Shown here: positions 5,261-49,549 of the stretch, piece after piece | How positions within the stretch are numbered: position 1 is the first letter of the stretch | Layout of the letters: the number at the start of each line of letters is the position of its first letter | Origin: Epithemia pelagica | Lineage: Eukaryota > Protista > Bacillariophyta | Reading direction: 5' to 3' | Length of the DNA: 64,000 nucleotides | NCBI GenBank assembly: GCA_946965045.2 | Contig: OX337229.1 | Coordinates: 3,348,001 to 3,412,000 of the forward strand | Made by a program: the position numbers and the translations under genes | Notes under the pieces: model-generated | Told to the model about the DNA's origin: nothing | The model's database searches: none | What the model saw: only the letters and a program-made list of their open reading frames with translations

Positions 5261-8200
5261 ATGAGCCGTCTCTTGACTCAGGCAACCACTGTGCGTTGGA
5301 AGCATGTTCATCCTTCGACTTTTGGTTATGGCCGTGCTTCATTCATTCCAACACAAGGCTTTCCACCATGCCTGTTGTTTCGACGAGACACAAAGGTCCA
5401 CCCGCAAACGCATCGATCCCTCTTCCAGGCAGCGTTTTTACGAAAGGATGGACAAGGTGTTTCGGCATGGTCGACTGCCACCAGCCTTTCGCCGCAAACA
5501 ACGACAACAAATGTTGGATCGAGTACCACGTCTCTGCATGGCCACCATGCTTCTAATGACGACAATCTGACCGAGCCAGTTTCTTCGTTGCGACTACTCG
5601 AAGATCCCTTTTATCAGCATGTGCGATGGAGGCGTAAGGATGGTCACCGCTTCTTTATGAAACCACGTCCACCGTCCAAAAAGCAAAAGCGACGATACCA
5701 GCGTCTCAAACGGAAACAAGAACTGGAGGCCCAAAAACATGGTGCACCCGGATCCAAGGCGGGAGAAAAGCGACAAATGCTTCGAGAATCCACCAAAGAG
5801 TTTTTGGAACCCTTGCCTCCCTCCAATTCTTCGCCCGAATCGTTGGAATCCTACAATGCCGGTGATGCCGCTCTCGAATCGCTCGTGGGCAACATGAAAG
5901 AAGGTATCCCCACACCGATTCCCCGATTTTTGGGTCATCGACAGGAAACCCTCTATCAACGAGTTGCTGGGACCATGAAAACGTTTCGGCGAGATATGGA
6001 TGCCCTGGGTGGAGGGAACAATCCCATGACCCACCAAATGCTCAAGCTCAGTGATGGAGGTGCAGAATCATTGGCACAGGGGGACCAAACTCCCAATCTT
6101 GCACAATCACTCGTGTCGGACAGTGCCCTCACGACCGATCCTTCCGAAATTGAACTGCCCAAAGACAAGGATATTGCGCTGGCCGTACGAGCCTTTCGAG
6201 ATCGGTATGGGACACGACAAAGCCCGGTCGGTCTGGCCAAGGCACTCAGTCATGTCTTGCAAGACATGGGAGTTCCCTTGTCATCTTTGGGGGATTACAG
6301 TTACAATGCCCTCATGGCTTGTGCCAAAACACCGAATGAAGCTCGAAAAGTCATGGACTTGATGAAACAACAAGGTCATGCCATTTTGCCTCATTCCTGG
6401 GCCATATTGGTGGATGTTCATGCCAAGGCGGGAGATTATCAAGGCTGTGTAGCGGTTCATGAAGAAATGGCCACACATGGCTTGTCTCCCGTCTTGCCAT
6501 CCTATACGTCTCTCTTGGCAGCCTGTTACAAAGTCTGTGCCAATCCATCTCTGTCCCATGCCGAACGAGCCCAAGCACACAAGGTGGCCTGGGAAAACTG
6601 GAAAGAAATGAATATTATTGGGATTGAACCCGATGCAATGGCATTTGGTGCCTTGCTTCGTATTATTGCTACCAAGGGCATGCCGGAACGGGCCTTGAGT
6701 ATTTTGAACGAAATGCATGTCCGCAAGGTCCGTCCCACCACCTTGTGTTTTACCAGTGCTTTGCGTGCCGTGGCGCGGAGTCATGAAGTTGCCATTCGCT
6801 TTGAACGAGGATCCCGACGAAAACAAATGCGACGAGAACAAATTGCGGCTCATCATGGTAAATTGGCGCAAGAAATTCTTATTTTGGCCGAAAATGCCGA
6901 CGTGGAACATGATGATGGCTTTATCGCGGCGCTCATTTCCTGTGCCGCCGCGGCCGGCGATGTCGCCACCGCCAAGGCTATTTATGTGGCGAGTCAAATT
7001 CGAAGATTGGATCAATTTCGAACCATTGGAGACAATGACCATTTGGCGCGCTTGCGAGGAGAACGTGTGGACGATCCCGTAGACGACGACCATGCGGCAC
7101 CCCATCAACTAGTCGAGGGAGGTGGTGGTGGTAGCAGCAACAGTGGTCTCAGTACGGTTGGTCCTAGTTCCAGAGAAAGGGTGGACGAAAACAGTGTACG
7201 TATTCACAATAATGCTGTCCATGCCTTTGGAGAACGGGAATATGGTAAAGATACCAGAGTGTTGACTGCCATTGCCCGGGCCTGTGCCGGTGCTGCTGGG
7301 AAGAATGGGATTGGAACCATGTGGCAGGGACGAGAAAATGAAGGATTCTTGTGTATCAATTCACTCCGACTACTCAAGACTAGGGGGGTGCCCAACTATA
7401 CCGATACCTCCATTCCTGGTGAATCGCGCGGAGATTACTGGCAAGAAGAAAAAGATACCATTGAAGGTAGAGAACATGAATGGGGCCGGAAACATGGACG
7501 ACCATACAAAGGGCTTATCCCCGAAGATAATCCACAAACAAGTATTTATGATCTTGATGGAGAGATGCGAGACATGATTTTGGATGAGCATGGTGACAAA
7601 AAGCCAGAATTCCGCAATATGAACTTTGAAGATGCTTGGAAACTGAAATATGGGGCCAGTGACCGAATGTTTCTTGAAGTTAAAAGAGCCAAGGGCTTTA
7701 TTCTTGGTGAGGCTGATATGGCCAAACTAGATGCAGGAGGAAACTCTTCTGTGTTACCCCTGTCGGCAGGGTCCCCCGACGAAGCGAATAGTAGTGAGAG
7801 TGACGGAGGGACCTCGAGTGGAATCGGTGAGTTTGCTGTGTCGAGTGGCGTGGGAAATGGCACCCCTGTAGGTGGTGACGAGGAAGGACTTGAATTTAAC
7901 TACACAACCATGACATGGGAAACAAAATCAACCTCATCATTGAAAGACTCGAATACCATGAACAAGAACGTTGAGGTAGAAGAGGAAAGCATGAGTGGAA
8001 CGCAAAGTCAAGGAGTAGAGGAAGATACGGAAACAAAGTACTATGATACTCCCAACACAAGCCACAAATCGACGTCAGTTGTGGCACGTTTGGAAGAGAG
8101 CACCACGACGGCCGTAACTCCAGCAAAAGATCTTGATGACCTGGAGCAGTCAATGTTCGGACGAATCGAGAACACCAAGGGAAAACGACCACTAGGGGGA

Positions 8201-40606: not shown

Positions 40607-42742
40607 ATGCAGCGTCTTGGAGAAAATGCAATGTGGTTGCGGGAGGACAATCTCTCCATCAAAAATGAGATTGTGATACCCTACGACAGTGAACTGGCGC
40701 TATGGGATCGTCCATCCTGGGTGGACTCTCTTTTGCGATTACGGTGGTGTTTTTGTCCAACATCGCCTTCCGCCCCATCCACCACACTCGAGAACACCGG
40801 TCTACTCAAGTCCAACAAGAAAAGCAAAAAGAAGAGAAAAAAGCAGCAGGCCTACCAGAACCGACAACGCGGAGGATCCACGTACTATGCCTATCAACAC
40901 CCACGCTATGACATACCTCCCCCACCACCACCGACCCCCTATGAATACCGACACCATCATAACGTGAAGTATGAAAATTACGGGCATTTTTCCTTTGCCG
41001 AATATCATTACCAAACCCACGGGTACAACTATCCACACCAGTCACAGGCGGACCACATTGGTTTTGTCCAGCCACATTCACATGCTGCCACCCACCACCG
41101 ATACAACCCAGTTATCAGAGATTCTTCCCAGGATCATTCTGGGTATGCGAACTATGATCATTATGCGCTAAGTTCCTTATCAAGCGCAGGAAGTGCCGAG
41201 CTCCTCGCTGCGGTGGTAACACCCGCAACGGAGGACCGAATGTCGCATCCAGCGGTGAATAATGGGGAGGGAATATCCGCGGCCGCCGCGGCTGCAGGAA
41301 ATGCAGCTGCTGCGGCTCTCAAACGAACGACAGAGAAAAGAGAAGTCGAGAAACGAGAAACAGAAAAGCCATATCAGCAACAAAGGCTTTCTACGTCGTC
41401 CAGAAACCCAAATCTACCTCCCCTCGTTCATCGTGCCCCTTCACCACTTCCACATGGTCATTCACATCAACAGGAAACGACGGTTACACCGTCATCGTCA
41501 GCTGTAGGAGAAAAGCCCCCTTTGCCGGTACCTTCACGGTCTGTGAGTCCTTCGTCGGTAACCCGACCAGTTTTACAGATTCGACCTTCGTCGCCATTTT
41601 CAGATCGACCGAGACTACATTCAGACGGTTCGAAACGAAGTGTAGGCACGGGGAGTACGAGACATCGACGAAAAGCTCATGAAACATTTGAGTTCAGCTC
41701 CAACAGTTTACAGCAAATTGTCAAGCACGAACAGGAACTCCCTCGTACGTCCCCTCCGAAGTACATTGAGTATCCAAGTCAACCTGCGATTGTTGATTGG
41801 CCTGCACTCGATTCCAAACATTTCGATGATGATGATAACAGCACCACCAATCTGTCTCTGGATGAAGAAATCAGACACTTGGTGTCAAGAGCTTCCAAGT
41901 TACCTAAGACGGTTGAGTACATGTCTCCTGTGGAATCTTCTGACGATGCAAACACTCTTGAGCGCAGCACGAATCTTCCGGCATTGTCTTGGTTGAATTC
42001 GTGGTCCGCCCAGGGCGACGATGCTGCGGGTAACCCAGCTCAAGAGCCTCAGCTTACAGAGTACCTGGCCATTAGCAGATCCGTTCGAATGAAGGAGAAA
42101 GTACCATTGTCATTGTCAAAACACAGGTTCAAGGAAAACAATAAGATCGGCGCGGAAACACCCGTCTATATGCCCCGATGTAAAGCATATGACAGACCAT
42201 TACGGAAGGCAAAGAACCGGGTGGTCGTTTCTGGATGGGCTGCTGTTTCCTTGTCGGACAAGTTACGAAACAGATTGGTTGTGATGGAAGGTCCCCTTCA
42301 ATTAAAGCACTCTGATATCTCATACATCCAAGTGATTCAATTTTCGGATCGATCCAAGCGTCCTGTATTGAGAATCAAACAGGAATCAGGAGATCATGAC
42401 GTTGAGCTGAAATCGCGGTATGAGCAGCAGTTCATAAGTCAGGACGTTTGTGGTCGTGCAGGCCGTTGTGTGTGTCTTGTGGATGGCACCACGAGAGAAG
42501 CCTTGGCGACAATTTTACCCGTGTCCTTGCCGAAATACTTTTTCCGCAACGATAAGCTTGTGGACGGAGCGTCGTTTGACAACTGGCAAACGGCTCTTTT
42601 CACTCCCTTTGTGAAAACACCACCTCGATCCAGCCGTGAACATGCGGATCGAGGAGCCGAGTTCTTTATGAATCGATATGCCCCCGATGAACAATACGAC
42701 GCTGCCACGCATCTGTTGTTCTCGGCGGATTCTTTGTTGTGA
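40607..42742 (+). CDS. Uncharacterised 711-aa protein (His/Tyr/Pro-rich low-complexity N-half, folded C-terminal domain)
   Basis: Long uninterrupted ORF; no family motif recognised. Confidence 0.65.
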   Translation: MQRLGENAMWLREDNLSIKNEIVIPYDSELALWDRPSWVDSLLRLRWCFCPTSPSAPSTTLENTGLLKSNKKSKKKRKKQQAYQNRQRGGSTYYAYQHPRYDIPPPPPPTPYEYRHHHNVKYENYGHFSFAEYHYQTHGYNYPHQSQADHIGFVQPHSHAATHHRYNPVIRDSSQDHSGYANYDHYALSSLSSAGSAELLAAVVTPATEDRMSHPAVNNGEGISAAAAAAGNAAAAALKRTTEKREVEKRETEKPYQQQRLSTSSRNPNLPPLVHRAPSPLPHGHSHQQETTVTPSSSAVGEKPPLPVPSRSVSPSSVTRPVLQIRPSSPFSDRPRLHSDGSKRSVGTGSTRHRRKAHETFEFSSNSLQQIVKHEQELPRTSPPKYIEYPSQPAIVDWPALDSKHFDDDDNSTTNLSLDEEIRHLVSRASKLPKTVEYMSPVESSDDANTLERSTNLPALSWLNSWSAQGDDAAGNPAQEPQLTEYLAISRSVRMKEKVPLSLSKHRFKENNKIGAETPVYMPRCKAYDRPLRKAKNRVVVSGWAAVSLSDKLRNRLVVMEGPLQLKHSDISYIQVIQFSDRSKRPVLRIKQESGDHDVELKSRYEQQFISQDVCGRAGRCVCLVDGTTREALATILPVSLPKYFFRNDKLVDGASFDNWQTALFTPFVKTPPRSSREHADRGAEFFMNRYAPDEQYDAATHLLFSADSLL

Positions 42743-43191
42743 ATGTATAATGATTCTCCACACTTGTCTTTGCTTCAGTGAGGGGAGAAAACGCTACGAA
42801 TGTTCTCATTGTCAGACAATTTGCGTTCAGTTCGTCACTCAACGCATGAATACTACTAGGTGCTAGTCTCTAATAACGAACTGACCTGTTTGCAATGGTC
42901 TTTTAACTCATTCAGAATAAATTACTTCACAGTAGGTACTTTATAGCTACAGAGTGACGGAGGCCTAAAAGTAGGTCCTCCATCCATTCAATGGGTTCAT
43001 TCTTGGTTGAGAGTCCCGTCGGAGGTCACGATTGTTTGAGAAATTGGTTCCAACTCTAGGTAATGCCAGACCGACCATTGCAGTTGCGTGTAAATACTAA
43101 CCAAAGGACCAGTCGACAAGGGCAAATTAGAGCGCAAGAATAGAATCATGACACGTAGTCTGACCAAGATAAGCAAAATGCAGCGAGAAGG

Positions 43192-43693
43192 TCACTGTTC
43201 CGAATCGGATTTGCCCTCCTCGTTCATTTTCTCTTCCTTGAGATATTCATCCAACAGTTCTTTGGCCCGAAACACTTTGGATTGTAGATAAAAACTTCCG
43301 CCTTTTGAAATGTCGTTCGCAGCCATGTACTTTTCGTATTGCTGTATGTGTGAATTGTTGGTTTAGGAATTATTGGTGTCCATGGAAACGAACAAAACAT
43401 TGAGAGACAACATACAGGAGGGTACCAAAACACCCACGAAAGATAGGACTGACCTTTTGGACTGCTTCCAAGGTTACTTCTGTTTCGCTCAAATTCAACA
43501 CTTGCAGCGCTTCCTGCTTGCTTATGGTTCTTCGTAGGATCGATGAGGCCGCAGACGCAGTATTGGCATCCATTCCAGCCTTTCGAGCATTTTGAAGAGC
43601 CTGTTGGTACGCCGCTGGGAGGGCCCGAGCTAGGACTGCCACCAAGGGAACAATCACTTGAGCGATAATTCTTGCAAATGGACCGATTGCCAT
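43192..43693 (-). CDS. PAM16: Mitochondrial import motor subunit Pam16/Tim16; complement(join(43192..43341,43454..43693)), 129 aa
   Basis: [17 protein letters not shown], then after a 112-nt intron [26 protein letters not shown], the J-like domain signature. Confidence 0.93.
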
Positions 43694-44148
43694 TTTTTTA
43701 AACAAACGTTGAGATAGAATGGAATGGATCAGTTGATAGATGATATTCCACTGTGTGAAATCGTATCGTCGACACAGAGACACTTCATTCTTCATTTGCG
43801 ACCTTCTGGCGCGAATGGCGAAATGGATGGAAGTCGCACGAGCGAGAAAGAAAATCGCAAGGCAGACAGACATGGGGACTGACATGACGTCATATCGTGC
43901 AGCAACCATATTGTAGCGTAATGACCGTGTGCACCGTGAACTCGGAGACGAAAACTAATGACGTCATAGACTTTATTGATAGACCAGGGACACCCGGAAA
44001 ATCTTCACACGCGACCAATCAAACAAAATTCTAGAAATCTCGTATTACAGTACAATGATCTTAAGTAATCTTGAGAAAATCTAACGGTCGCGTATGCATG
44101 GACAGGAAAGTAATCTACTTAAGGATTTTGCACGCACGCATAGCACTA

Positions 44149-44336
44149 GGAAAATTCACATCATATGCGAATTTTCCCATCAGATATGAAAATTCACATG
44201 GAGGTGCGATTCTTCACGTGAAGATTCGCACCTCTCATGTGAATTTTCACATCTCATGTGAAGAAAAAATTTCTTCACATCTTCTTCACATCGTCTTCAC
44301 ATCGTCTTCACATCGTCTTCACATCATGTTCGAACG
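44149..44336. repeat. Left TTCACAT / GAAnnTTC motif array with 11-bp tandem (TCTTCACATCG-type) block
   Basis: GAAnnTTC dyads at 44150, 44169, 44188, 44220, 44241; tandem CTTCACAT copies ~44272-44325; ends in TTCGAACG. Confidence 0.92.
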
Positions 44337-44867
44337 ACCTCGGGATCCACAGAATTTGTCGTCGTCATCATCTCATCATCATGTTGGATGCTCTCGACTC
44401 AAGATTGGTTGCGGGCTGAATCAGGTTTGGTCCAAGGCATTTCGAATCGACACCACCTACCAATCACACTACACCACCTACCAATCACTACTACTACAGT
44501 TGTTGTTTTTGTTGTCCTTGGGACGGCAAGATTTGATGGAAACGACCAGTTGATTGGATCCCATTGCCAAGATGGCACGGACTTGGGACGTCGTGGCCTT
44601 CATTCAAAAACACCCTTGCTCAACGCCAATGTTGTTTTGAGCGACAATGGCATTCTACCCGACCCCCAAGCCAGGATAACCACCAACCAACCAGTGACAA
44701 CCACCGCAACCACAAGTTTGCGAGTGCGACACCCTCCAGCAGCACAACAACAACAACAACGACGACGACATCTACGACTGATTCACCGTGGCACTGTCCT
44801 GGTCAAGTCCATTGGGAATTGGCCTTTCAATTGGAACGGTTGGTCCAACAATTCAACAGTATCAAGA

Positions 44868-44906
44868 GTCCCTCGTCCCTCGTCCCTCGTCCCTCGTCCC
44901 TCGTCC
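44868..44906 (+). repeat. 7-bp minisatellite (GTCCCTC)x5.5
   Basis: Five full units plus GTCC, read directly from the sequence. Confidence 0.95.
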
Positions 44907-45304
44907 TGACCCAACAACCAACGCTGCAAGAGCAGCAACATGCCCATGGCACTCATAGTCTCACTTGTGAAGGATCAACACAACCATCTAATCCCTGGTT
45001 GTTGTGGAATGCCAACAACAATTGTTTTCGTACACCCAGGTACGAACGATATTGACACTGGTTTGGTCAAGACGGCATGCTTTGTTCTCACAAGAATACC
45101 CAGCCTACGGACAACAAGACAAAACCAGATGACAACAACAATTACAACAAGGATCTGGTCGGGGCTGCTGGAAACACAACAACAACAACAGCTCCAAGGA
45201 ATCAATGAGGTCCTGGTCCCGGAGGATCAGGAGAAACAGCAACACTAGTAACTACTTTCTATAGTCCTTTATTCTCCCATTTTTCTTTCATACTCTCATT
45301 TTTG

Positions 45305-45509
45305 TTGTTTTCACATTGTCTTCACATCTCCTTCACATCTTCTTCACATCTCCTTCACATCGTTGATGTGAATTTTCACATATTCATGTGAATTTTCACA
45401 TGAAGTGTGAATATTCCTATCGCCACTTTTTTCTTCACATGACAGATGCGAAATTTCACATCGACGATGTGAAATTTCACATGAAGTTTCCTTGAAGTAA
45501 ATTCGAACG
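45305..45509. repeat. Right TTCACAT / GAAnnTTC motif array with tandem CTTCACAT block
   Basis: Tandem (C/T)TTCACAT copies ~45310-45360; dyads at 45370, 45390, 45409, 45450, 45471, 45483; ends in TTCGAACG. Confidence 0.92.
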
Positions 45510-45821
45510 CCGTCCTGGTTGATCTTTTTAGGTTACTTAAAGACAAGAGAAGGCATGCGTGATAACAAATGAATACTTAGATGACTGGTACAGTACTATG
45601 CAATTCTCTAAAATGTCAACCTTCAGTCCTCGTCCTCTGTGAGGATTTTCCGGGTGTCCCCGCGCGTACTCAAAGCGCCAGAGTTGAATCTCACAGACCA
45701 CGTACCACAACGAGCATTGGTCCTTATCGCGACAAGCACACACTCTTCCGTCGACGTTCGCATAGTCTTTTTGCATTCGACGACGATCGCCGTTCGACGT
45801 ACATATATTATAGAGATCACC

Positions 45822-46890
45822 ATGGCTCCTACTGGTCAAGCTTTGTTGGCGCCGTCCCCGGCTGGAAAGGCCTATGACTTTTCCTACTATCTTAAGGGAG
45901 CTGCCGCTGGAGGTATTTGCTGCTCCATCACTCATGGTGCTCTTACCCCCGTCGACGTCGTCAAGACTCGTGTGCAGTTGGATCCGGTCAAGGTGAGAAA
46001 GCTTTTGACTAAGCTGTGCAGATATCCAAGAGCTGGAATGGATTTGTGTAAATGTCAACAATGAGCCTTGTATCTAACATTATGCTTGGAAACTTTAGTA
46101 CAACCGAGGTTTGATTGGTGGTTTCCAACAGGTCGTCGCCGAAGAAGGAGCGATGGCCTTGACGACCGGTCTCGGTGCGACTGTGATGGGTTATTTCATC
46201 CAAGGATGGTTCAAGTTCGGTGGAGTCGAATTCTTCAAGATTAAGGCTGCCGAATACTTGGGTGAACAGAAAGCCTGGGATAACAAGACCAACATTTACC
46301 TTGGAGCCGCTGCTGGAGCCGAGTTCATTGCTGATCTTTTCCTCTGCCCTCTTGAAGCCGTTCGTATCCGTTCTGTGTCCGACCCAGAATTTGCTGACGG
46401 TCTGGCAGATGGTTTCGTGAAGATGGCCAAGACTGAGGGTGTCATGGGATTTTACGCCGGTCTTGTCCCCATCCTTTTCAAGCAAATCCCTTACACATGC
46501 GCCAAGTTTGTGGTTCAAGGAAGTGTTGCTGATTCCATCTACGCCAGCATGGGTAAATCGCCAAAAGAAGTCGGAGGATCCACAGCCATTGGAATCTCTC
46601 TTTCGTCCGGTGTGGTTGCTGGTGTTGCCTCGGCCATTATCTCTCACCCCGCCGACACCCTCCTTTCCAAGGTGAACAAGAAGGGAGCTGGTGGTGACGG
46701 TCCCATGATGACTCGTCTTATGAAAATTGCCGGTGAAATGGGTATGTGGAACCTCTGTACCACCGGTTTGTTCGCTCGTTGCGTCATGATCGGAACATTG
46801 ACGGCAGGACAATTTGGAATCTTTGATACCGTCATGGGTGCCCTTGGTGCCAGCAAGTTCCACTTCCACAACCCAGCAGCTGACCATTAA
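45822..46890 (+). CDS. MIR1: Mitochondrial phosphate carrier (SLC25A3/Mir1); join(45822..45992,46099..46890), 320 aa
   Basis: THGALTPVDVVKTRVQ, YFIQGWFKFGG, CPLEAVRIR, KQIPYTCAKF and SHPADTLLS carrier motifs; 106-nt phase-0 intron. Confidence 0.95.
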
Positions 46891-47287
46891 ACTACTAGAT
46901 TCGCCTGTATGAATATTCATATCACATCTCTACATACGATATCTATAATCCATTAGTAAGGAATAAGGTGCAAGAGAATGCTTGTTGATGAGGCAGTAAG
47001 CAAAGAGTTTCCTTCCTATGAGAGAATGTAGCACTATAAAACTCCTGGAGTACCGGTATCTTTAATGTCGAAAAGTCAGTGGTGTTGTTGTGTCCATATC
47101 TACATGCCCAGGAAGTCTACACAAAGCAGAAGCAATGACGTGATGATATGCCACAACCGATTCTCATGTAGGAGTATCGAGCTGAACCTTTTTCATCACA
47201 GCGTGCGGTTAACTTTGTTACTGGGCGATTTGCCATCCTTTCAAATCGACAACTGTGGACACCATTCTTTGGTTGGAATATGCTCGA

Positions 47288-48506
47288 TTAGAAAATCCCT
47301 GTTACCCAAGTCCGGGCCAGCATCATCATCAGCTTTAATCGATGAGCTTCATGAAGAGTAGGGTCAAGAACATCGAAGTTCGAGTTCTCCAATCGAGATA
47401 GATAGAGAAGAGATGGGACAACTGGGAGCAACGACGAACGTGCTGATCTCGGAACCTTCCCTTGTCTATCTCGGGCTTCTGAAAAATAGGTCGATGCGGT
47501 TAAGGCCATTGTTTTGACCGCTTCCCGCCATTCCTTGGAATCTTCCTCGCTTAGGACTTCCTCGCCACCTAGACTATCGCGTAATTTTTGGTATGGGAAG
47601 ACTGGAGAGAGCAGGTTTCCTGGTATTGTAACTTCTCCATCAATCAACCGAAAAGGTGTGCCTCTCAGAGCAGTTGTAAGGCCAATCCCAACTCCGGCAA
47701 AGGATGCTACTTCGTCTGCCGCATCATCTCGTACCTGTCAGTAGGGCAAAAATCAGACAACCAACATCTAGCGTAACGTATCAAATCCACCAAAGCTCAC
47801 ACTCACCCCATTGCATTCAAGCGAAAGATACAAGAGACTAGATACACTTTGCTCAGCGTAGTTCGCCGCTTCCTCCATTGTGCCGAACTGACTGAGTTCC
47901 AGATCACTCTGACGTGCCTCGACAAGACGTTCTAGAAATCTTCGTGTTAAATTGGACTCCTCGTTCGCAGCGTTCAATGCCCGCACAATGGGACTTTTCC
48001 AGCAGGACACGGAAAGATTGGCCAACGCCGGATCAGAAATATGTGGAGGTGGATCGCCATAAATTTGTGCTATGGCATCTGTCCACCACTGCAGTCTCAC
48101 TTGAAGCATATGCGTTTTTGTTGATGAATCTTGCGTGCCCGTCGATTCTCGTGATCGAGTATGATGTCCACCTTTAATGGACGCAATCTCAGCGTTGAAG
48201 GCACGAATGGCAAAGAAAGCCTTCTGGACCCTATGAGGCATCAAAAGGCCGCAATCTTCCCATTTTGATTTTCAAAAATTCGACTCAGTTTAGAATAAGA
48301 GACTTGACTCTGAATCATGACCCATTGAAATACTTACAAAATCCCTCCCTATCACGGTCTCGAACAACACCGATGCAATAATCGATATCTTGCTTCGTAT
48401 GTTGACGTTCGTCAGGATTTGATGAACGAGTCACCAAACTCCTCCATTGATTTCGCACTAGACTTCGTCGAAAGCAGCGTAACTGGGATCCAGATGCCAT
48501 CGCCAT
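47288..48506 (-). CDS. NDUFAF6: Complex I assembly factor 6 (squalene/phytoene synthase fold); complement(join(47288..47734,47807..48255,48338..48506)), ~354 aa
   Basis: YCIGVVRDRDREG, AIRAFNAEIA, RLQWW, LERLVEARQSDL, YAEQSVSSLLYLSLE and G.G.GL..ALRG motifs; mitochondrial-type N-terminus; two GT-AG introns (82, 72 nt). Confidence 0.9.
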
Positions 48507-49549
48507 TGTCTGTCTCTGTTCTCATACAAACGCGGCTGGTTGACAATCTGACTTTTTCTATTGCCGCCATGGCCAATCGGAACATGACCCATCAATCTGA
48601 CGTCACAGGCTCGCGCCATCGATCTTCTGTGTGCCCGGCTCGCGCGCAACCGGATCTTTAACTTTTTCTTTGCCCGTTGGTCACAAAATCAAAGTCAACG
48701 GGTGGGACGTCCATGGTCCTGTGGCGGTCCTTGCCAAATAATTTTCATCCCTACGAATATCGCACTGGTTGCAACTTGCAACTTAACAAGGCTCAGGTGA
48801 AAGTGCTGCGTGAACGAGTATCGCGTTTCTGAAAGCTGATCAGACTGTCTAGAATCTAGAAAGGAACTGGACGATGCAGCTTGAACGATTTCTGACTTCA
48901 GCGGACTTTTCTCCACGCAATCTCGTCAGAATCTGCGAGATACATGTTCCATCTCTTACTGTCTGTCAACAAGCCCATCTTCCCAGCTCAAGCGATGAAA
49001 TCAGCGAGATGGTTGATTTGGAAAGTCTCCACCAAAAGGCGAGATCCAGGACTTCCACCAATGTTGCCATGGCAAAGGCTTCTGCAAGTGTTGGCACATC
49101 GTGGACTTCAAAACCTCACAACACGATGAGAGCTGAGAGCGACCAAACAACAATGGAAGGCTTGGAAGTCAATGAGGATCAACTTCTACAGAGTGATTAT
49201 CACTTCAAGAGGGTATGAATCTCTTACACTCTATGACTTAGTCCTGTGCTGTCAAACCTTTTGTCAACAAAGAATTGTGGTTTGTACGTTCTGACATGCG
49301 GATAAGGGTGTTGAAAATGCTTCCTTATCCCGTCCCAAGCTCTCAGATTGCCAAGTGCTGCTCTGGGCCAGAAAGACACTTTCGATAGTTTTGTGACTCC
49401 ACTGAAATCACGGCGATATGTGCAGGAGTGATACTACATACTCTTCTACAAATGCTTCGACCATCCACATTTCGATAGAATGCCCACACTTTGTGAACAA
49501 GGGAAGACCCGGTGACAAACACAATATTGTTTAATTAGGCTGCTTACCT

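Follow-up and report, generated by a model that had tools for sequence, protein, structure and literature searches.

Duplications of a CWG target define the NuwaI group of the PHIS (PIF/Harbinger-ISL2EU-Spy) superfamily of DNA transposons, a group described from 16 animal genomes, with terminal repeats of 12-61 bp that usually start with GGG, and with a DDE transposase accompanied by a Myb/SANT partner gene (Han et al., 2015; PMC4482050). Both Harbinger proteins are needed for transposition (PMC2836001), and PMC9710019, summarising the work of Sinzelle et al. (2008) on Harbinger3_DR of the zebrafish, the only PIF/Harbinger member examined biochemically, names a 9-bp subterminal motif as the binding site of the Myb-like partner. 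Here we describe a similar element in a diatom, within a 64,000-nucleotide stretch of Epithemia pelagica contig OX337229.1 (hereafter the window, to which all positions refer unless a locus or contig is named). The segment 43988-45659, lying between the divergent genes PAM16 and MIR1, is very probably a 1672-bp non-autonomous PIF/Harbinger (PHIS) transposon, one of those whose insertion duplicates a CWG target of 3 bp; its mobility, ends, target duplication, family, gene capture and absence from orthologous sites are established. An initial annotation, made from the letters of the window, had proposed at 44061-45540 a TTAA-bounded, foldback-like cassette of about 1.5 kb. That observation was real but wrongly bounded: the kind of element was right, the family and the target site were wrong.

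The ends were fixed by comparison between copies. When window 41000-49000 was aligned by BLAST with the fetched copies, homology stopped at 43984-43987 and at 45660 in all of them, thus extending 73 bp (left) and 119 bp (right) outward of the TTAAs, and the flanks outside the terminal repeats were unrelated from copy to copy. Homology begins on the left with a 22-bp terminal inverted repeat, GGACACCCGGAAAATCTTCACA (43988-44009, + strand), and the right terminal inverted repeat (45638-45659, - strand) matches it at 21 of 22 bases. This 22-bp sequence occurs 15 times in the genome, versus 0 occurrences of a reversed control pattern, and had no match in the metagenome contigs scanned. Directly outside lie the target-site duplications, CAG on the left (43985-43987) and CCG on the right (45660-45662), the other haplotype of the locus (L043) showing CAG on both sides. 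The two TTAAs taken earlier as the ends are present (44061-44064 and 45537-45540) but internal, as the 60 bp leftward of the first are kept in 8 of 8 compared copies and the outer flank of the second is kept among copies as well; both sides of each TTAA being homologous in all copies, the 1480-bp cassette is the interior of the 1672-bp element. The weak inverted similarity noticed beside the TTAAs was recovered, with a local score of 31 versus 17.1 +/- 3.6 in 500 shuffles, the best of which scored 37. A hAT-like reading of the ends (CAGGG.. start, 8-bp duplication) was also considered and is ruled out, as the flanks lack 8-bp repeats.

Reading the outer bases with GGACACCC as the element start, we found among the seven complete copies in the 60.5-Mb genome assembly searched (G000; C numbers are its contigs, L numbers individual loci retrieved) CTG/CTG three times, CAG/CAG twice, and CAG/CTG and CAG/CCG once each, the last being the window copy. 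The CWG duplication is thus perfect in 5 of 7. CWG is self-complementary except for its middle base, so flanks alone cannot fully separate a duplication from an extended terminal repeat, and an empty site was therefore sought. It was found for one long relative: a full-length, 5637-bp copy flanked by CTG/CTG (L039; ENA ERZ21939226, ctg1296l) occupies a site that is unoccupied in G000, where the same flanks (96-98% identical) are joined by a single CTG (C5:1587037-1587039). The two are exact filled and empty alleles, which fixes the ends and shows a 3-bp CTG duplication; the empty site also contradicts the view that every copy is a fixed segmental duplicate. ERZ21939226 was reached via an exhaustive protein search, through a protein identical to that of the 3' gene of the family, and represents the same organism: L038 is 100% identical to C6 of G000 over 10.85 kb, and L042 shows the same full identity with the window over 12.7 kb. 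Between haplotypes the long type is polymorphic, and hence the family moved recently. The locus in the window is filled in both haplotypes of the isolate, the second one (L043, 99.36% identical) carrying the same insertion between CAG and CAG; the CCG on the right of the window copy is therefore a later A-to-C point change. No clean paralogous empty site was found for the short copies on C4 and C5, whose flanks are unique or lie in a nest of CWG-inserting repeats. Taken together, filled and empty alleles are direct proof of recent movement of a CWG Harbinger in a diatom, in a branch that was described in 2015 only from animals.

Searched against G000, each arm of the element matches 8-9 places at 87-98% identity, and the arms are thus not single-copy. 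Nine copies of the family were delimited in this assembly, four short, two intermediate and three of a 5.6-kb type. The short copies measure 1619-1672 bp and lie on C2 (the window), C4, C5 and C13, with pairwise Kimura two-parameter (K2P) distances of 0.008-0.035, while the intermediate ones, of 3.25 and 4.17 kb, are both on C5 (L019 and L017). Among the three copies of the long type, 5609 bp in length, one on C8 (L018) is uninterrupted, a second on C8 has grown to 28.8 kb through two nested insertions, and the third, on C6, is truncated at its 5' end and has a Copia-type retrotransposon nested in it. Short and long types are homologous only at window 43987-44340 (88-89%) and 45189-45660 (81-85%), the short type retaining about 350 bp of the 5' end and about 470 bp of the 3' end of the long one; what they have in common is the ends, and therefore the parts that carry the repeat arrays described below. 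The definition of a MITE (miniature inverted-repeat transposable element) of the Tourist-like type does not apply to the short type, with its 1619-1672 bp and 4 copies versus less than about 800 bp and a high copy number. The earlier proposal of an undescribed non-autonomous DNA element thus holds for the non-autonomous DNA transposon, which is borne out by multiple copies, differing flanks, sharp termini and the empty site, and fails for the undescribed kind.

The family assignment comes from the long relatives. An intact open reading frame (ORF) of 419 amino acids (aa) at L021:3179-4438 matches the Pfam profile DDE_Tnp_4 (PF13359) at E 8.6e-13, with 48.6 bits against a cutoff of 24.8 and over positions 1-157 of the 158 in the profile, and the transposase of L018 matches DDE_Tnp_4 at E 4.7e-9. 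DDE_Tnp_4 is the sole transposase in the 5.6-kb relatives, which are thus the transposase-coding elements with the same termini and place the family in PIF/Harbinger, contrary to the initial view that no known family fits. At least 100 Harbinger-type transposase matches, from many families, are found in the genome, and only 3 belong to the present family. Of the two key genes, each survives undamaged in one or more copies: L021 has an intact transposase, L028 an intact partner gene. On the opposite strand, the 5.6-kb type has two more conserved ORFs, one of about 480-550 aa and one of 144 aa (L018:4693-6342 (-), L039:6147-7595 (-) and L018:2845-3279 (-)), with no informative neighbour in the atlas for either. 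No Pfam family scored above threshold for the 144-aa and 482-549-aa ORFs of this type or for the internal ORFs of the window copy, and an atlas search with the 549-aa ORF gave only scores below 0.8.

Between the retained ends, window 44341-45188 is common to the four short copies and is otherwise found at only one locus, on C18, at 70% identity. This locus (L030:3117-4742, minus strand) contains an intact 541-aa ORF with a signal-peptide-like start, which is single-copy outside the elements and has neither the terminal repeat nor the arrays nearby. By tblastn, its residues 108-390 match window 44394-45190 (+ strand) in three different frames, with 2 stop codons interrupting the match. From 45189 on the sequence is again homologous to the 5.6-kb type, and 45195-45248 (+ strand) is a remnant of the last 17 codons and the stop of the 3' partner gene of the autonomous element, as read from the translations (..GINEV..EDQE..Q..*). 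Judging from these alignments, the short type is a Pack-type element carrying a decayed host-gene fragment. A second subfamily, represented by L019 (2310-4804) and L017 (2383-5695), carries 2.5 kb that are 92% identical to a locus on C11 (L031 2986-5485; C11:622485-624984). This insert comprises residues 24-623 of a 623-aa ORF, with 2 stops, and the 3' part of a neighbouring gene for a weakly DsbD_2-like membrane protein. No Pfam family was recognised in the donor-like gene of C18 or in the 623-aa gene of C11. Capture of host-gene fragments by such elements in a diatom is thereby documented twice independently within one family.

The subterminal parts of the element are built from repeats of one half-site, TTCACAT. 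On the left, a palindromic dyad block of the GTGAAnnTTCAC type (44147-44262) is followed by an 11-bp tandem array of 4.9 copies of TCTTCACATCG with 97% matches (44272-44325, + strand); on the right, an 11-bp tandem array of 4.7 copies (45310-45361, + strand) adjoins a palindromic dyad block with a spacing of 20-21 bp (45354-45498). The initial annotation described this layout accurately: the exact inverted matches of 16 bp (44254-44269 / 45427-45442) and 14 bp (44150-44163 / 45364-45377) are there, the 13-bp match (44188-44200 / 45385-45397) sits within a 16-nt pair that is 94% complementary, and the tandem monomers have one orientation in the two arrays, both of which read TTCACAT on the + strand. 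The half-site, counted as TTCACAT or ATGTGAA, occurs 23 times in the 1.67-kb element versus 12 times in the other 62.3 kb of the window, a more than 50-fold enrichment, and the two arms contain 11 GAAnnTTC dyads. Spacings of 11 bp and 20-21 bp put the half-sites on one face of the helix, and the palindromes are of the 2-bp-spaced form. The arrays are common to short, intermediate and long copies, and hence shared with the autonomous type, with a varying number of 11-bp units. Conservation among copies is 0.94 in the TTCACAT columns versus 0.79 in the spacer columns on the left, and 0.97 versus 0.94 on the right. Because the Myb-like partner of a studied PIF/Harbinger element binds a subterminal motif, the arrays would be the binding platform of the partner protein of this family, and we infer, by analogy, that they are bound by its 193-aa helical product.

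The candidate partner is the 3' gene of the long type, intact at L028:3392-3970 (C6:1527691-1528269 in G000) and encoding these 193 aa. Its partner role is well supported by genomic association: in a cross-tabulation over G000, of the 43 loci that match the protein, 38 have a Harbinger transposase match no more than about 3.5 kb away. The protein has 834 relatives among representative clusters at E <= 0.001, and no Pfam domain was found in 59 sampled members of this family. Its AlphaFold model, with a predicted local distance difference test (pLDDT) score of 92.7, consists of two repeats, each with three short helices and one long helix. Residues 98-177 of the model resemble the DNA-binding domains of homeodomain, SANT and Myb proteins at Z 4.7-5.7, and residues 1-93 resemble FF domains at Z 5-6, values that may reflect merely a common helical arrangement. 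Foldseek returned no PDB structure for the model at E <= 0.001, and a profile search of PDB sequences returned none either. The DNA-binding partners of Harbinger transposases in diatoms thus probably come from a large unannotated protein family, for which TTCACAT is a defined candidate binding motif.

We propose that the 1672-bp element goes back to one of 5.6 kb with several genes in the same genome, of which it has kept the ends with their terminal repeats and arrays, the genes of this ancestor having been replaced by a captured host-gene fragment that has since decayed. These ends would be recognised by two proteins that long copies provide in trans, a DDE_Tnp_4 transposase and the helical 193-aa partner with its two repeats. 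In this scheme, the partner would bind the TTCACAT half-sites, presented on one helix face as 11-bp phased direct repeats and 2-bp-spaced palindromes, and the transposase would cut at the terminal repeats and paste the element into a CWG site. The copy in the window landed in a bidirectional PAM16/MIR1 promoter of about 450 bp.

The comparison of this intergenic region with its orthologues is consistent with such an insertion. PAM16 (43192-43693, - strand; the orthologous genes carry Pam16 Pfam labels) has its ATG at 43693, 291 bp from the insertion, and the gene for the mitochondrial phosphate carrier, MIR1 (45822-46890, + strand), has its ATG at 45822, 159 bp from it; the closest named proteins of the carrier, from Epithemia, Entomoneis and Amphiprora, are 86-88% identical. 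The two genes are divergent neighbours here as well as in ERZ25042306 and in Epithemia clementina (GCA_051400955.1), where the spacers between them are 363 bp and 568 bp long, respectively. Neither the arrays nor the terminal repeat occur in these two orthologous spacers, and the spacer in the window, without the element and one copy of the duplication, measures 453 bp. On the PAM16 side of the insertion the native spacer contains two TGACGTCA palindromes of the CRE/bZIP type (43885-43892 and 43959-43966), and the same pair is found in the orthologous spacer of ERZ25042306. The element inserted between these palindromes and MIR1 and now separates them from that gene. More speculatively, in diatom Harbingers of the CWG type, two-repeat helical proteins of about 190 aa outside Pfam (the 834 clusters) might replace a recognisable Myb/SANT ORF1 and read TTCACAT half-sites in helix-phased tandem arrays and dyads, and a 23-site array dropped into a bidirectional promoter such as that of PAM16/MIR1 might act as a portable platform that rewires its neighbours; in this extended form we regard the idea as tentative and rather unlikely.

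Several observations weigh against reading the window copy as a member of a NuwaI-like family mobilised by the proteins of its long relatives. No copy was seen with all genes intact: in the uninterrupted copy L018 a 2-bp insertion shifts the transposase frame, the transposase of L039 is broken, and where the transposase is intact, the copy is interrupted by two nested insertions. Between the ends of short and long types, identity is no more than 81-90%, which makes present-day cross-mobilisation uncertain. The captured fragment is merely 70% identical to the C18 gene, and the true donor may therefore be a paralogue that is lost or foreign. Concerning the partner, the 193-aa protein has no Pfam match to Myb, SANT or MADF, its fold matches are below the level that the tool regards as safe for helical proteins, and its language-model neighbours, which are MADF and Myb_DNA-bind_4 clusters at 0.82-0.85, stay below 0.9 and are leads only. 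Finally, the terminal repeat starts with GGA (GGACACCC) and not with the GGG usual for NuwaI, which is obtained only if the G of the duplication is counted; as the description says "usually", this start does not exclude membership.

Other explanations have to be set against these points. A piggyBac-like element, or another one inserting at TTAA, with its limits at the tetranucleotides of 44061 and 45540, would account for the TTAA at both positions, but sequence on both sides of each TTAA is kept in all copies and homology runs on to 43988 and 45659, the empty site shows the CTG duplication at the outer ends, and the autonomous relatives carry DDE_Tnp_4 and no piggyBac transposase, so that we give this reading practically no chance; TTAA as target duplication falls with it, the true duplication being the 3-bp CWG. 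The modular arms, with dyads outside and a tandem block inside, and the weak inverted similarity that continues beyond the terminal repeat recall foldback elements, in which long arms of inverted tandem subrepeats would let the element move by its own arm structure. Yet the orientation of the tandem arrays is identical in the two arms, which, apart from the terminal repeat and the dyad block, can be aligned only poorly (mean column identity of 73% in a gapped global alignment, with identity at only about half of the left-arm positions), and the ends are shared with a gene-bearing Harbinger element; a foldback mechanism is hardly credible here. It is only slightly less improbable that the arrays belong natively to the PAM16/MIR1 promoter as an immobile, symmetric platform for regulation, for instance as GAAnnTTC dyads that resemble heat-shock elements and are bound by a host factor; a symmetric DNA-binding platform had already been raised by the initial annotation. 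The 11 dyads in the two arms and the position between divergent genes speak for it, but the same arrays are found at at least 9 unrelated loci within one bounded element, with which they move, they are absent from the orthologous PAM16-MIR1 spacers of two related diatoms, and the element contains no run of three alternating nGAAn units as in a canonical heat-shock element: neither GAAnnTTCnnGAA nor TTCnnGAAnnTTC occurs in it, and with one mismatch allowed only two matches appear, both outside the arrays. Host factors may make secondary use of the arrays once inserted.

The most serious alternative accepts the same family but takes the copy in the window for an immobile fossil, its arrays being relics whose sole present role would be that of a spacer moving native promoter elements 1.67 kb away from MIR1. 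The presence of the copy in both haplotypes, the 81-90% identity of its ends to the long type, the lesion in every long copy seen and the small number of short copies (four, at K2P 0.8-3.5%) all agree with it. Opposed to this are the near-perfect terminal repeats (21/22), the conserved half-sites, the haplotype polymorphism of the long type, which implies recent movement of the family, and the intact transposase in L021 and partner gene in L028. We consider a fossil plausible, if on the whole doubtful, and favour a non-autonomous element whose ends would be recognised by the proteins of its long relatives. In any case, the supposed undescribed foldback- or piggyBac-like cassette is now a fully bounded annotation, and its arrays should not be taken for heat-shock elements or for a native module of regulation.

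The copies of the family are themselves targets of other insertions. Two of the three 5.6-kb copies contain nested insertions of 8.4, 14.7 and 6.9 kb (C8:1764889-1773273, C8:1775770-1790516 and C6:1519331-1526198); the first begins directly after the transposase stop codon, and the last is the Copia-type retrotransposon, L038 482-3694 containing an RVT_2 gene. Nested in the intermediate copy L017 is an element of about 820 bp (C5:1273582-1274399) with inverted ends of about 42 bp and dozens of genomic copies at 93-99%, which appears to be an abundant MITE-like family. The left tip of L017 (C5:1272123-1276296) is aberrant, with TGTGTCCCCGG in place of the expected GGGACACCCGG (L017 about 6091-6097 and 1900-1923), as if its first 7 bases had been inverted locally; the right end of this copy adjoins GGGACACGGGGG, forming a palindrome across the junction, and these anomalies may be traces of aberrant end processing. 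The short copy on C4 (C4:718914-725301; L024, L037; also L035 and L036) lies within a nest of other repeats whose ends abut CTG or CAG, with junctions such as ..GGGTATCC|CTG and ..CTCTCC|CTG|GTCGGACC.., which suggests that several CWG-inserting families land at each other's duplicated sites.

Compared with the systems known so far, the element shares with piggyBac nothing but TTAA tetranucleotides, which here are internal, whereas its duplication is CWG and its transposase belongs to another family. It is closer to the Pack-TYPE transposons of plants (Pack-MULE, Pack-CACTA, Pack-Harbinger; PMC8903248), likewise non-autonomous terminal-repeat elements with a captured host coding interior. These were described in plants, and in the literature searched we found no description from a diatom; the fragments seen here are decayed and known from sequence evidence only. 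With the Ping/mPing pair and Tourist-like MITEs (PMC2836001) it has in common that only the ends of a two-protein Harbinger remain in a non-autonomous derivative, which would depend on mobilisation in trans and is inserted close to gene 5' ends, whereas those elements duplicate TWA and not CWG and measure less than 0.8 kb in hundreds of copies versus 1.67 kb in 4 copies; the long subterminal arrays and foreign interior of the present element are further differences. For these arrays Harbinger3_DR (PMC9710019) provides the model: short motifs repeated in the subterminal regions are bound by a small helical partner, which brings in the transposase; the present element differs from it in its TTCACAT half-sites, 23 per element and both tandem and palindromic, whose binding is putative. 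The closest likeness is to NuwaI, with which the family shares a 3-bp CWG duplication, confirmed through an empty site, terminal repeats that are short and G-rich (their 22 bp fall in the reported range of 12-61 bp) and a DDE transposase without another recognised domain next to a separate small partner gene. It departs from that group in having about four genes in the autonomous type versus two, in a partner without a detectable Myb/SANT Pfam domain, and in its host, a raphid pennate diatom, NuwaI having been reported only from animals. Compared by description, the element and its family fit the NuwaI branch by their CWG duplication and the length of their terminal repeats.

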